NCBI GenBank assembly: GCA_004764695.1
Contig: SMSO01000008.1
Location: forward strand, 1 to 64,000
From: Schizochytrium sp. TIO01
Lineage: Eukaryota > Protista > Bigyra: Labyrinthulomycetes
Direction: 5' to 3'
DNA: 64,000 bases
Shown: piece by piece, positions 23,684 through 42,765 of the stretch
Numbering within the stretch: the stretch's first letter is position 1
Layout: every line of letters begins with the position of its first letter
Notes under the pieces: model-generated
What the model saw: the letters and a program-made list of their open reading frames with translations, nothing else
Told to the model about the DNA's origin: nothing
Database searches by the model: none
Program-made: the position numbers and the translations under genes

Positions 23684-26600
23684 TTATTCAAAAATATAAG
23701 GGCCTAGACATCCCAGTGCTCCACGAAAGCCAACGTTTGCAGCTTCCTGCAAATCAAGCTCTACTTTCTGCGCAGCAAGGTAGTCCTCTTTCGAACTCAG
23801 CTCACCAGAGCTGTTAACAGGCCAAGTCTGTGTAAGAAAACTATGCTTCACTGAAAACGGCAGACTAAGTGCATTGTTTACAACATGCATACAACGAAGT
23901 TCACGAGATATCTGTTCAAGCATTTTCCGTCTTGTCTTTGCAGAGTAAATACGTCGATTTAATCCGACCTCCTCACGCATTTCATCCGTCAACCTCTTGG
24001 ATATTCTAAAAATCAATAAAAACCAAATAACATGAACTCCGTTTGTTAGTTAACAGTTTCACGTCATTAAAAGGTACCCACACTATTGCCAGTACAGTTT
24101 CACTCATTTACTAATGTTATCGTGCTCTCTGTTAGATCCACACTCAACCAAATAAACAATTTCACAACAAACCTGCAATCACGCTAAGAACATAGGCAAA
24201 ATAACACACTAGACAACCCACGAAGCAACGAACCAACCAACTAACCAAGCCTCGTGTACAAACGAGTCCATACACTACGGTGTTCCTAAGTTAACTTACT
24301 TGAGTGATGTCAGCGACCGGTTCTCTTTCAGCGCCGCACCCACTGCCTTGGCGCCCTCGTCGCCGATATTGTTGCCATAAAGACTGTCGATTTGATTCAA
24401 TGATGGCAAGCAATACATTACACATTACATATTACAATAGATGCACGCATGCATGCATGGACGTGAGTGATCTAGGTTGGCTTTCACCATTTATCTTTGT
24501 TGTGTTGTCATTTTGCTCTTTGTTCGATGGATGTATACTCACTCAAACAGACAACTCATCCATCCATCACATCCATCCATCAAACAAACAAGCGATTGCA
24601 TAAACTTGCAAAACAACACCGACCCACCCACCAAACAACAAACCAAGCATAATGTACAAACAAGTCCACGAGCTGCGGTGTTGCGTAGACAACTTACTTG
24701 AGTGATGTCAGCGACCGGTTCTCTTTCAGCGCCGCACCCACTGCCTTGGCGCCCTCGTCGCCGATACCGTTGTTTTCAAGACTGTCGATTTGATTGAATG
24801 ATGGCAATCAATACATTATATTACATTAGATGCATGCATGGATGTGAGTGATCTATGTTGGCTTTCACCATTTATCTTTGTTGTGTTGTCATTTTGCTCT
24901 TTGTTCGATGGATGTATACTCACCCAAACAGACAACCCATCCATCTATCAAACAAACAAGCGATTGCATAAACTTGCAAAACAACACCGACCCATCCACC
25001 AAACAACAAACCAAGCATCATGTACAAACAAGTCCACGAGCTGCGGTGTTGCGTAGACAACTTACTTGAGTGATGTCAGCGACCGGTTCTCTTTCAGCGC
25101 CGCACCCACTGCCTTGGCGCCCTCTGAGCCGATATCGTTGTAGCGAAGACTGTCGATTTGATTGAATGATGGCAAGCAATACATTACATTGTAATGCATT
25201 ACATTGGATACATGCATGGACGTGAGCGATCTAGGTTGGCTTTCAGCATTTATCTTTGTTGTGTTGTCATTTTGCTTTTTGTTCGATGGATGTATACTCA
25301 CTCAAACAGACAACTCATCCATCCATCACATCCATCCATCAAACAAACAAGCGATTGCATAAACTTGCAAAACAACACCGACCCACCCACCAAACAACAA
25401 ACCAAGCATAATGTACAAACAAGTCCACGAGCTGCGGTGTTGCGTAGACAACTTACTTGAGTGATGTCAGCGACCGGTTCTCTTTCAGCGCCGCACCCAC
25501 TGCCTTAGCGCCCTCTGAGCCGATACTGTTGTATCCAAGACTGTCGATTTGATTGAATGATGGCAAGCAATACATTACATTGCAATGCATTACATTGGAT
25601 ACATGCATGGACGTGAGCGATCTAGGTTGGCTTTCAGCATTTATCTTTGTTGTGTTGTCATTTTGCTTTTTGTTCGATGGATGTATACTCACTCAAACAG
25701 ACAACTCATCCATCCATCACATCCATCCATCAAACAAACAAGCGATTGCATAAACTTGCAAAACAACACCGACCCACCCACCAAACAACAAACCAAGCAT
25801 AATGTACAAACAAGTCCACGAGCTGCGGTGTTGCGTAGACAACTTACGATAGTGATGTCAGCGACCGGTTCTCTTTCAGCGCCGCACCCACTGCCTTGGC
25901 ACCCTCGTCGCCGATATTGTTGCCCGAAAGACTGTCGATTTGATTCAATGATGGCAAGCAATACATTACACATTACATATTACAATAGATGCACGCATGC
26001 ATGCATGGACGTGAGTGATCTAGGTTGGCTTTCAGCATTGCATCTTTGTTGTGTTGTCATTTTGCTTTTTGTTCGATGGATGTATACTCACTCAAACAGA
26101 CAACTCATCCATCCATCAAACAAACAAGCGATTGCATAAACTTGCAAAACAACACCGACCCACCCACCAAACAACAAACCAAGCATAATGTACAAACAAG
26201 TCCACGAGCTGCGGTGTTGCGTAGACAACTTACTTGAGTGATGTCAGCGACCGGTTCTCTTTCAGCGCCGCACCCACTGCCTTAGCGCTCTCTGAGCCGA
26301 TACTGCTGTATCCAAGACTGTCGATTTGATTGAATGATGGCAAGCAATACATTACACGTTACATATTACAATAGATGCACGCATGCATGCATGGACGTGA
26401 GTGATCTAGGTTGGCTTTCAGCATTTATCTTTGTTGTGTTGTCATTTTGCTCTTTGTTCGATGGATGTATACTCACTCAAACAGACAACTTATCCATCCA
26501 TCCATCCATCCGTCAAACAAACAAACAAGCGATTGCATAAACTTGCAAAACAACACCGATCCACCCACCAAACAACAAACCAAGCATCATGTACAAACAA

Positions 26601-40300: not shown

Positions 40301-42765
40301 AAGTACCGTCCAACTTAGCACATCAACCAACAAACAAGCAATCAAGGAAGTCTCATGTACAAATAAGGCCACTAAGACAACTTACTATAGGGAAGTCAGC
40401 GACCAGTTCTCTTTCAGAGCCGCAGCCACTGCTTTGGCGCCCTCTGGGCCGATGTTGTTGCCACCAAGATTTTGATTTGATTGAATGATGGCAACCAAGA
40501 CAATACACATTAGATGCAGGCATAGGCGTGAGTGATCGATGTTGGCTTTCAGGATTTCATCTTTGTTGAAATGTCATATTGCTCTTTGTTGGATACAAAC
40601 TCAATAAAACAGGTCATTGATCCGTGAATCAATCAAACAAGCAATCGCATACACAAACTTGCAAATCAAAACTGAGCAAAATATCACCGTGCAATTTAAC
40701 ACACTGAACAACCCACCACCCAAACAACCAAGTAAGCGAGCCTCATGTACTTGTTCGTACATGAGCTGCACTGTTGCGTAGACAACTTACGATAGTGATG
40801 TCAGCGACCGGTTCTCTTTCAGCGCCGCAGCCACTGCCTTGGCGCCCTCGTCGCCGATGTCGTTCAAATATAGACTGTTGATTTAATTAAAGGATGGCAA
40901 GCAATACATTGCATTATTATGCATGCATGGACGTGAGTGATCAAAGTTGGCTTTCAGAATTTCATCTTTTTATGTTGTCACTTTGTTCTTTGTTTGATGC
41001 AAACAGAGAACCAATCCATCAATCAATCAAACAAACTAGCAATCGCGTACATAAACTTGCAAATCAAAACCGAGCAAATGACTACCCTACAATTCAACGC
41101 ACTGAACAACCCACCACATAGACAACCAAGCAAGTGAGCCTCATGTAGAAACAAGCCCACGAGCTGCTACCAAAACGACTTACGATAGAGATTTCAGCGA
41201 CCAGTTCTCTTTCAGCGCCGCAGCCACTGCCTTGGCGCCCTCGTCGCCGATGTCGTTCCCATATAGACTTTTTAATTTAATTGAAGGATGACAAGCAATA
41301 CATAACATTATACGCATGTATGGACGTGAGTGATCTAGGTCGGCTTTCACAACTCATCTTTCTACGTTGTCACTTTGCTCTTTGTAAACAGAGAATCAAT
41401 CCATTACTCACACAAATAAGCGATCGCATACATAAACTTGAAAATTAAAACCCAGCAACAGACGACCACCGCGCAATTCAACGCACCAAACAACCCACCA
41501 CCCAGACAACCAAGCAACGCAAGCGGACCTTATTTACAAACAAGTCCACGAGCTGCTGCCAAGACAACTTACTATAGTGATGTCAGCGACTGGTTCTCTT
41601 TTAGCACCACAGCCATTGCCTTGGCGCCCTTCAAGCCGATTCTGTTAGAACGAAGACTGTTGATTTTTGATTTGATGGCAAGCAATACATTACATTATAC
41701 GCATGCATGGATGTGAGTGATCTATGTTGGCTTTCAGGAGTTCGTCTTTGTTGCGTTGCCATTTTGCTCTTTGTTGGATGCATACTGAATCAATCAAACA
41801 GACAATCTATCTATAAATCAAATAAACAAACAAGCAAGCGTAAAAACTTGCAAAACAAATTCGTGCTAACCACCGCTGTGCAATTCAACACACCAAACAA
41901 TCCACCTCCCACCTACCCAGCTGAGCAAGCAATCAACGAAACAATTTAGCAAAAGCAACCCACATGCCGCCGTCTAACACAACTTACTCAAGTGATGACA
42001 GCGACCGGTTCTCTTTCAGAGCCGCAACCACTGCTTTGGCGCCCTCTGGGCCGATGTTGTTGCCACCAAGACTTTTGATTTGATTGAATGATGGCAACCA
42101 AGACAATACACATTAGATGCATGCATAGAATTAGTGAGTGATCGATTTTGGCTTTCAGAATTTCATCTTTGTTGAAATGTCATATTGCTCTTTGTTGGAT
42201 ACAAACTCAATAAAATAGATCATTGATCCGTGAATCAATCAAACAAGCAATCGCATACACAAACTTGCAAATCAAAACTGAGCAAAATATCACCGTCCAA
42301 TTTAACACACTGAACAACCCACCACCCAAACAACCAAGTAAGCGAGCCTCATGTACAAACAAGTGTAAGACAACTTACTCAAGTGATGTCAGCGACTGGT
42401 TCTCTTTCAGAGCCGCAGCCACTGCTTTGGCACCCTCTGGGCCGATGTTGTTGCCACCAAGACTTTTGATTTGATTGAATGATGGCAACCAAGACAATAC
42501 ACATTAGATGCATGCATAGAATTAGTGAGTGATCGATATTGGCTTTCAGGATTTCATCATTGTTGCGTTGTCATATTGCTCTTTGTTAGATGCATACTTA
42601 ATACAACAGACAAGCAAGCAAGCAAGCAAGCAAGCAAGCAAGCAAGCAAGCAAGCAAGCAAGCAAGCAAGCAAGCAAGCAAGCAAGCGATGCTAACTTAC
42701 TTCAGTGTTGTAGCACCATTCTGAAGCTGTTCAAGGGCAGCGACAACACGTGGGTGGTCCGACAT
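37369..42765 (-). CDS. Multi-exon LRR-Roc-COR-TIR (ROCO family) protein B, ~1040-1070 aa
   Basis: Exon 1 is 42765-42701 (MSDHPRVVAALEQLQNGATTL). The 84-nt LRR exons are at 42379-42462, 41988-42071, 41573-41656, 41184-41267, 40791-40874, 40386-40469 (acceptor lost) and 40029-40112. The last exon is predicted at 39928-37369 (CAG|TCTT, phase 2). Roc motifs GKGGAGKTS, STIG, WDYGGQE, VGTFLD; COR motifs FMHELGVI, VLQPQWL; TIR motifs YDVFLSH, CWLD, GIDDSKV, CRYEF. Confidence 0.92.
42611..42687. repeat. (GCAA)n microsatellite, ~19 units, in intron 1 of LRR gene B
   Basis: Read directly; same position as in gene A. Confidence 0.95.

Follow-up and report, generated by a model that had tools for sequence, protein, structure and literature searches.

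What occupies the long repeat arrays between the ribosomal RNA (rRNA) genes near the chromosome ends of thraustochytrids: spacer DNA, or genes, and if genes, of what kind? The question is raised here by the first 64 kb of contig C7 (SMSO01000008.1) of Schizochytrium sp. TIO01, referred to below as the window; the genome searched was a 64-Mb, 37-contig assembly. Two paralogous genes, A and B, were found in the window on the minus strand, each containing a run of exons of exactly 84 nt that encode one leucine-rich repeat (LRR) apiece. A first-pass annotation had described them as cassette-built LRR receptors and as candidates for a diversifying immune-receptor system; its observations have been confirmed and its interpretation partly supported, in that the genes are real, spliced and modular. 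Genes A and B are considered here, as a rather probable reading, to belong to a very large germline family of intracellular LRR proteins with hypervariable recognition in this thraustochytrid.

Anatomy of the two genes and splicing of gene B

A scan of the whole window for AG, 84 nt with an open frame, and GT returned 14 cassettes in gene A and six in gene B, all on the minus strand (Table 1), and no further LRR-like cassette outside these two genes. The cassettes previously listed as exactly 84 nt long and in phase 2-2 were recovered in this way. Of the exon counts first given (14 and 7), that of gene A stood, while in gene B six cassettes are intact and the seventh is without an acceptor. 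Each cassette consists of the third base of a split codon, 27 whole codons and two further bases, with phase 2 introns on both sides. Since the length is exactly 84 nt and the phase is 2 at either end, cassettes can be added or dropped without loss of frame, as had been claimed. Each encodes one 28-residue LRR of the ribonuclease-inhibitor (RI) type, the cassettes having the form LxxLxLxxNxIGxxGAxxLAxALxxNxx as judged from their residues and from the predicted structure of a relative described below. Single exons matched Pfam LRR_6 (PF13516) at E=2e-4 to 5e-4, which is below the gathering score for one repeat.

Gene A comprises 16 exons and encodes a protein of 520 aa, running from the ATG at 29850 to the terminal exon at 24005-23684. 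Its first exon is 88% identical to that of gene B. The introns are 284–344 nt long (284–317 nt for the 13 between cassettes) and all read GTAAGTT...ATCGACAG; the array is reported by Tandem Repeats Finder as a 391-bp unit in 13.8 copies (24232-29592). The cassettes begin, in order, with LNSND, FHYEN, LYGNN, LQSND, LYGNN, LSEND, LGYSS, IGCNY, LGYSS, LSGNN, LGYNS, LRYND, LENNG and LYGNN, an exact match to the strings first reported. The split junction codons are formed from GA, GT, AA, TC or AC plus T and give D, V, N, S and T, the same five residues as in the earlier list. Apart from its LRRs, gene A has only a lineage-specific tail, which matched no family in a Pfam search, had no convincing neighbour in the ESM Atlas (best score 0.88) and had just four relatives among 1.84 billion representatives in an exhaustive HMMER search. 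The tail is predicted to be helical in a relative.

The last exon of gene B encodes a Roc GTPase, a COR-A and a TIR domain (Table 1). The Roc P-loop and DxxGQ motif are intact, with G52, AGKTST (56-61) and D182/G184/G185/Q186 invariant in 14 relatives, and a Roc domain with intact motifs adjoined by COR would place gene B among the ROCO proteins. In the TIR domain Glu778 (last-exon numbering), within the motif C-R-x-E-F, is invariant in the same number of relatives (14, at 27–58% identity); it is designated a candidate catalytic Glu on the strength of its motif, and in the HMMER alignment a neighbouring Glu took that position. A weak sequence match of the TIR to a chain of PDB 4lzp and to 7uxr, a TIR domain protein, was also obtained. 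In a 2026 preprint the active-site Glu is described as highly conserved in a eukaryotic TIR group that includes thraustochytrid TIRs, and a green-alga member of this group makes 3'cADPR. The best protein relatives of gene B are public LRR_6-Roc-COR-TIR gene models of Hondaea fermentalgiana, which carry automatic names and are 43% identical. No NACHT or NB-ARC STAND NTPase was found among the Pfam matches of gene B. Since its switch is Roc-COR rather than NACHT/NB-ARC, gene B is not an NLR, though it may be NLR-like in its working.

Cassette 6 of gene B, when compared with cassettes 1 and 2, has lost one G at its acceptor; judging from this site it is probably skipped in splicing, and the frame of gene B is kept with or without it. 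Because the intron upstream of it is 96% identical to intron 2, this cassette is taken to be a recent unit duplicate that is newly dead.

Splicing was followed in Logan contigs from four runs of four studies, which were placed on the gene B region (37300-42800) and in which joint ends of CT..AC correspond to GT..AG on the minus strand. The joint 39928/40029, between the last cassette and the Roc exon, is present in all four runs, and the joints 40874/41184, 41267/41573 and 41656/41988 in three of them (X2, X3 and X8). Contig depth in run X2 is about 340–780 over the Roc exon versus 21–50 over the introns, a difference that DNA would not be expected to show. The gene B contigs extend upstream of 42768 as a 5' untranslated region of paralogous type. 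In many contigs one cassette scaffold is joined to the end of a different cassette, with a stretch of about 27 foreign letters between them. This stretch is the hypervariable patch (3 nt of exon end and the first 24 nt of the next exon), and one such contig reads as a LERNE cassette, like those in the paralogous locus L003; these contigs are spliced transcripts of paralogous family members. Joints that appear to go back or to skip far along the gene were rejected as exon skipping of gene B on the same grounds, being paralogous transcripts in which the scaffold matches and the patch differs.

Family size and pattern of variation

The genome contains at least 40 scored copies of the gene A tail exon (77 candidates), which are 83–100% identical. 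The Roc-COR-TIR exon has about 17 full-length paralogues, with 42–100% identity, together with relatives that possess Roc-COR only, and the gene A type (LRRs and tail) forms the majority of the family. A genome-wide search, proposed at the outset with the 84-nt consensus, was made with a single cassette and gave 1,071 first-look candidates, and the germline repertoire is put at about 1,000 cassettes.

Twenty loci of the gene A type (L001-L020) were taken, with a scaffold-match score used to find their LRR exons. Variation was studied in 292 cassettes of 21 arrays, and borders and frames in 291 scaffold matches. All 291 frames are open and 289 matches have clean AG-84-GT borders; two otherwise intact cassettes, in L014 (contig C4) and L015 (contig C36), have AT or GC as donor, not GT, and are dying or reflect use of a non-canonical donor. 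An independent-base null predicts about 49 stop codons at codons 2, 3 and 5, where the cassettes have none (codon 8 was excluded from the null because its two-form structure inflates the expectation). Chance is therefore excluded as the source of the open frames.

Paralogous arrays differ in the number and order of their cassettes. The 20 loci hold 4–20 cassettes each at a spacing of about 385 bp, and 192 of the 210 array pairs have no cassette signature in common. Mosaic blocks occur in different contexts in the window array, L018, L009, L002 and L001, as with LGVNE-LDDNK-LRKNK. The tail of gene A is 99% identical to the tails of L001 and L002, from which gene A has no cassette in common and whose introns are the most distant from its own. 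Altogether 219 different five-position signatures are present in the 292 cassettes. A further regularity is that 290 of the 292 cassettes start with T. The split codon, consequently NNT, can never be a stop codon and takes its residue solely from the upstream cassette; under this NNT junction rule a reordering of cassettes alters no residue, and the cassettes are freely exchangeable.

Variation is concentrated at five places. Residue entropy over the 292 cassettes is 3.55 bits at exon codon 2 (19 residue types), 3.37 bits at codon 3 (16 types), 2.96 bits at codon 5 (12 types), 1.83 bits at codon 8 (12 types) and 2.53 bits at the junction codon (12 types), and does not exceed 0.93 bits at any other cassette position. 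In gene A nucleotide diversity is 0.5–0.75 at codons 2, 3, 5 and 8 and in the final 3 nt of the exon, compared with a mean of 0.08 in the introns and mostly 0–0.14 in the scaffold, in agreement with the earlier description of near-invariant introns and helical part. The motif across the splice site is L-T-S-L-x-L-x-x-N-x-I-G-x, which puts the variable residues in the latter half of the strand and in the loop leading from strand to helix; the x positions first singled out as variable do lie in this LxLxxNxIGx segment. The predicted model of a distant relative, P0122, which has LRRs and a homologous tail, reaches a predicted local distance difference test (pLDDT) score of 70–88 over the LRRs and shows a strand-helix alternation with a period of 28 residues. 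Its fold matches include the LRRs of NOD2, NLRP1 and ribonuclease inhibitor (RNH1), and also tropomodulin, leiomodin and axonemal proteins.

The first-pass annotation had set the variable codons against neutral intron sites, and the comparison gave a clear excess. Within arrays, the proportion of differing non-synonymous sites (pN) is about 0.55 at the four hypervariable codons versus an intron divergence of 0.07 and a proportion of differing synonymous sites (pS) of 0.10 in the scaffold, and this holds in all 21 arrays; hypervariable bases differ about 8 times more than introns. Introns are nearly as similar between arrays (divergence 0.081) as inside a single array (0.064). When the comparison is restricted to 100 unit pairs with 98.5% or greater identity in the upstream intron, the difference is 0.86% for the introns and 33% for the hypervariable bases (39-fold); codon 2, at four bases from the acceptor, is changed in 54 of these pairs.

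Origin of the diversity and possible roles

That coding positions diverge more than the adjacent introns had been taken as a signature of diversifying selection. The excess is real; the signature is not a simple one, as synonymous sites inside the patches are saturated too (pS 0.475 vs pN 0.55). A plain argument from the ratio of non-synonymous to synonymous substitution (dN/dS) was rejected for this reason. Relaxed constraint alone was likewise rejected, since an 8- to 39-fold excess over intron divergence is more than neutral sites could show against a homogenised background. Serine at codon 2 is encoded by five codons almost evenly, against more than 90% use of one codon for scaffold serines. 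Patches also come as linked types: each junction dinucleotide has its preferred third base at Leu27 (C-AA 85/89, T-GA 67/76, A-TC 56/56, T-GT 25/25), and codon 8 has essentially two three-base forms, GAC or TCA. Between the near-identical arrays L016/L017 and L011/L014 the differences include whole-triplet swaps (ATC to TGA, GAC to TCA), and in one cassette all patches are replaced and the scaffold is unchanged; 23 of 435 hypervariable sites differ in these arrays vs 49 of 7002 intron sites (Fisher p = 7e-12). Saturated synonymous sites, linked patch types and triplet swaps argue against simple positive selection on point mutations. The association between patches weakens with distance, Cramér's V being 0.53 for codons 2-3 and about 0.25 for codon 8 vs exon end, a trend that fits a reshuffling of patches. 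As all cassettes share their flanks, a conversion tract of ordinary length will look like a three-base swap.

From these patterns we infer both a conversion mechanism and selection for diversity. Introns and helical scaffold would be homogenised across chromosome ends by concerted evolution, unequal crossover would change cassette number, ectopic recombination between subtelomeres would produce mosaic arrays, and short-tract gene conversion between cassettes would swap whole patches. Selection would then keep the frames open and the five positions different, rather than drive point substitutions alone. Of the routes to diversification first suggested, patch exchange by gene conversion and unequal crossover are favoured; a dedicated mutator is not needed for the diversity observed.

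A more directed process has nevertheless to be considered, in which diversification is programmed, by targeted hypermutation or templated micro-conversion, with somatic or clonal expansion by skipping or rearrangement as in the lamprey variable lymphocyte receptor (VLR) or the trypanosome variant surface glycoprotein. The sharp boundary of the patches, with introns identical up to the AG and saturation from 4 nt into the exon, would be in keeping with it, as would the whole-triplet swaps between near-identical arrays, the symmetric-phase exons that make skipping harmless and the one dead cassette tolerated in gene B. It is nonetheless improbable, given that ordinary meiotic or mitotic gene conversion with selection explains the same data, that codon 8 and the junction patch fall into a few linked types and not random sequences, and that there is no dedicated enzyme, silent donor cassette or isoform to point to, the contigs being uninformative on skipping. 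In a particular version of this idea, the pool of about 1,000 cassettes would supply the templates for a dedicated or strongly favoured micro-conversion that rewrites the patches and, together with harmless exon skipping, yields clone-specific repertoires. We give this little credence as well; on this version the arrays would stand beside rDNA at every chromosome end because recombination is most active there, and a unicellular stramenopile would possess fast, quasi-adaptive recognition.

Each gene consists of a short N-terminal exon, a run of interchangeable 84-nt exons and a C-terminal module, which is either the tail or Roc-COR-TIR; as to function, the encoded proteins would probably serve to recognise varied ligands within the cell. 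In gene B a Roc-COR GTPase switch would link the binding of ligands by the LRRs to a TIR domain with a candidate catalytic Glu, as an NLR-like sensor on a ROCO chassis. Sequence searches were made exon by exon, and the joined frames were examined for length, stop codons and hydropathy; no signal peptide and no membrane-like hydrophobic segment was found in the joined proteins of genes A and B, so that these would be intracellular sensors, if they are receptors at all. Persistent mirusvirus infections of the organism (PMC12606086) lend plausibility to an antiviral role; nucleocytoviruses are present in related thraustochytrids (bioRxiv 10.64898/2026.07.28.741200).

Several points weigh against the reading of genes A and B as a hypervariable recognition family. 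Ligand binding and an immune or antiviral role are deduced from sequence, and gene A has no recognisable signalling domain. The sequenced runs are only guessed to be RNA, and run X1 may be partly DNA. The contigs cannot show isoforms, expression level or strand, and the junctions they support are those of gene B and paralogous cassettes, those of gene A being predicted from its splice sites. Counted as events, the recent hypervariable excess over introns is only about 2-fold, and standard dN/dS cannot show positive selection where synonymous patch sites are saturated. The structural mapping relies on a moderate-confidence model of P0122, which is 38% identical, and not on genes A or B themselves, and RI-type LRRs also occur in the non-immune tropomodulin and axonemal proteins that are among its best predicted fold matches.

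Some of these points would suit the same genes, with the same dynamics, in a non-immune job, as variable intracellular LRR adaptors (cytoskeletal, ectoplasmic-net, nucleolar or telomere-linked), with Roc-COR-TIR serving ordinary signalling. The lack of a signalling domain in gene A and best fold matches that include tropomodulin, leiomodin and axonemal LRR proteins agree with this, and so does the tight embedding of the genes in the rDNA/5S subtelomere. However, a housekeeping partner leaves 219 signatures in 292 cassettes unexplained, as it does the active maintenance of diversity against a homogenising background, and hypervariable LRRs combined with an NTPase switch and with a TIR whose catalytic-type Glu is invariant are the standard make-up of an innate immune sensor; a non-immune role is accordingly regarded as unlikely, though of some weight. 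Far less credible is the published reading of such arrays as mainly structural subtelomeric spacers, with open frames and transcripts incidental. In its favour, the arrays are homogenised in sequence and, at almost every chromosome end, hold a regular place with respect to the telomere, 18S-28S and 5S genes; a structural role could also coexist with coding. However, all 291 cassettes are open and 289 of them have exactly 84 nt between AG and GT; splicing follows precise borders, that of the Roc-COR-TIR exon among them; homologous proteins are annotated in another genus; and variation is confined to five codons.

Chromosome-end setting and comparison with known systems

The order of elements in the window is the chromosome-end layout published for Aurantiochytrium limacinum (bioRxiv 10.1101/2023.06.15.545109). 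Genes A and B are 87–99% identical in the module formed by 5S gene, spacer and exon 1, which suggests one sensor front end with different C-terminal modules.

Table 1. Positions of the genes, cassettes, domains and neighbouring elements in the window
Feature	Position	Strand	Remarks
Gene A exon 1	29786..29850	-	ATG + 21 codons + 2 nt (MSDHPGVLAALEKLQNGATRL), then GTAAGT donor
Gene A LRR array, 14 cassette exons	24300..29441	-	Counterpart of LORE-TEARS group 0
Gene A cassettes 1-5	29441-29358, 29057-28974, 28681-28598, 28280-28197, 27895-27812	-	
Gene A cassettes 6-10	27510-27427, 27109-27026, 26718-26635, 26317-26234, 25931-25848	-	
Gene A cassettes 11-14	25540-25457, 25149-25066, 24781-24698, 24383-24300	-	
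Gene A terminal exon	23684..24005	-	106-residue tail + stop; putative splice acceptor
Gene B exon 1 (MSDHPRVVAALEQLQNGATTL)	42701..42765	-	ATG at 42765
Gene B LRR array	40029..42462	-	Counterpart of LORE-TEARS group 5
Gene B intact cassettes	42462-42379, 42071-41988, 41656-41573, 41267-41184, 40874-40791, 40112-40029	-	
Gene B cassette 6 (dead)	40386..40469	-	84 nt, open; acceptor AG reads AA
Gene B intron, last cassette to Roc-COR-TIR exon	39929..40028	-	100 nt
Gene B last exon	37369..39928	-	2.56 kb, stop included
Roc GTPase	~39795-39154	-	PF08477, E=2.3e-17
COR-A	~38925-38668	-	PF16095, E=1.4e-11; open reading frame (ORF) residues 356-441, directly C-terminal to Roc
TIR	~37851-37495	-	PF13676 (TIR_2), E=3.5e-12; PF01582, E=2e-7
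(TAACC)n telomeric repeats	1-277		Contig start
371-bp tandem array, 11.7 copies	666-4996	+	76% match, 33% G+C
28S-5.8S-18S rRNA unit	14461-19997	-	
5S rRNA gene divergent from gene A	30332-30450	+	481 nt upstream of gene A ATG
5S rRNA gene divergent from gene B	43231-43349	+	

A number of other features of the locus were recorded. The first introns of both genes contain the same tetranucleotide microsatellite, (GCAA)36 at 29621-29766 in gene A and (CAAG)19 at 42611-42687 in gene B, conserved in position and variable in length. The 6.8-kb spacer between the genes (30500-37300) has copies of 99% identity at C7:1033816-1040637 (inverted) and C8:69887-82404, parts of it recur at many other chromosome ends at 70–93%, and a 5S-flank-like stretch at C7:44737-45899 resembles it at 69–74%. 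Copies of gene B with 99% identity lie at C7:1031189-1033744 and C8:67260-69815. A Pfam search with ten ORFs between or beside the two genes gave no matches; a weak APH-like Pfam match (E=0.0024) falls in the spacer at 34836-35075. At C31:3158305-3210680 and other internal sites, deep in 9-Mb contigs, gene A-type tails and arrays stand head to head about 42 kb apart, and these look like assembly-joined chromosome ends or internal rDNA/LORE-TEARS islands.

The 371-bp array near the telomere is probably LORE-TEARS group 2. In 9–11 of its units an open AG-92/95 nt-GT segment is present on the plus strand, reading roughly IFSHKSNxxISTIHALSxGSSRKVLLxLLI; as its length is not a multiple of 3, this would not be a simple one-exon cassette, if coding. 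An 84-bp unit that occurs twice just downstream of 28S (14046-14217) does not resemble an LRR, and it is probably by coincidence that its length equals that of the cassettes. A duplicated segment centromere-proximal of gene B is suggested by two plus-strand tRNA genes (46413-46483 and 53523-53593) that are 7.1 kb from each other and have the same Rfam score. Finally, a 51-bp tandem unit in 6.5 copies with 87% match (56970-57302) may be a coding repeat, its unit length being a multiple of 3.

The arrays of the window have a published counterpart in the LORE-TEARS of A. limacinum, long repeats which separate chromosome-end elements and which were published as spacers without GenBank similarity, with a suggested part in chromosome-end maintenance (bioRxiv 10.1101/2023.06.15.545109). 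Group 0 consists of units of about 385 bp from 18S to the nearest 5S, and group 5 of units of about 421 bp between two 5S genes (same preprint). The gene A array, with its 391-bp unit in 13.8 copies, lies between 18S (19997) and 5S (30332), and the gene B array, with a cassette spacing of 357–415 bp, between two 5S genes; the groups are equated with genes A and B by position, unit size and copy number, not by sequence. Whereas the LORE-TEARS were published as non-coding, the arrays here are exon-intron arrays of spliced protein-coding genes. The first-pass annotation knew of no description of such a system in labyrinthulomycetes, and a literature search found no paper on the coding potential of LORE-TEARS or on an LRR repertoire in this group; the DNA itself had, however, already been published as non-coding. 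New in the present work are the splice evidence for a gene B copy, the dead cassette, the NNT junction rule, and synonymous saturation with the swapping of patches as units.

The nearest described system is the LRR-ROCO family of the brown algae Ectocarpus and Saccharina (Zambounis et al., 2012, PMC3341825; Teng et al., 2024, PMC11378527), so that the parallel with one-exon-per-LRR genes of Ectocarpus drawn at the start is a real one. Both systems have one LRR per symmetric phase 2 exon in an array N-terminal to Roc-COR, cassettes inactivated by loss of a splice site, variation on the concave face and a cassette number and order that differ between paralogues, and both have been proposed as immune receptors in stramenopile hosts. 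However, the brown-algal exon is of 72 nt and encodes a 24-residue, type I plant-like LRR (PMC3341825), compared with 84 nt and a 28-residue RI-type LRR here, which argues for a parallel system and not for membership of the brown-algal family. A C-terminal TIR, as in gene B, is not reported in brown-algal ROCOs (PMC3341825, PMC11378527). Unlike in the brown algae, most family members here are LRR and tail proteins and not ROCOs; the roughly 1,000 cassettes are subtelomeric, interleaved with rDNA and 5S genes, with introns homogenised genome-wide; no reverse-strand intronic cassettes were seen; and the host is a unicellular heterotroph. Among algae, only multicellular ones have ROCOs according to Teng et al. 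(PMC11378527).

Animal NLRs (NOD2, NLRP1, NLRC3) have the RI-type LRR class in common with genes A and B, to judge from the P0122 model, which matches NOD2 and NLRP1, and they share the logic of sensor, NTPase switch and effector as well as the cytosolic site. The LRRs of vertebrate NLRs are likewise encoded by repeat-sized symmetric exons. The switch in animal NLRs is a NACHT/NB-ARC STAND ATPase, whereas it is a Roc-COR GTPase in gene B, and the order of domains is reversed in the latter, with LRRs N-terminal and the effector (TIR) C-terminal. Subtelomeric contingency and variant gene families resemble the present one in their chromosome-end repertoire and in mosaics formed by ectopic recombination or gene conversion, and the lamprey VLR in its LRR cassettes with hypervariable concave residues. 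Somatic assembly, silent donors, mutually exclusive expression and surface location, which are traits of VLR and variant gene systems, have no counterpart evidence here.

If the equation with LORE-TEARS is correct, the published repeats that separate rRNA genes in Aurantiochytrium, taken as anonymous spacers, would include the largest gene family of the organism. One-LRR-per-exon cassette shuffling would be extended from multicellular brown algae to a unicellular heterotroph, in another LRR class and with a TIR domain added, which bears on the spread of NLR-like logic on a ROCO chassis among eukaryotes. The pairing of homogenised introns with saturated five-codon patches offers a clean system for studying the conversion and selection that maintain receptor diversity. 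As the organism can be cultured and is amenable to genetic work (the assembly preprint lists knockout lines), an immune role for the family would be directly testable.

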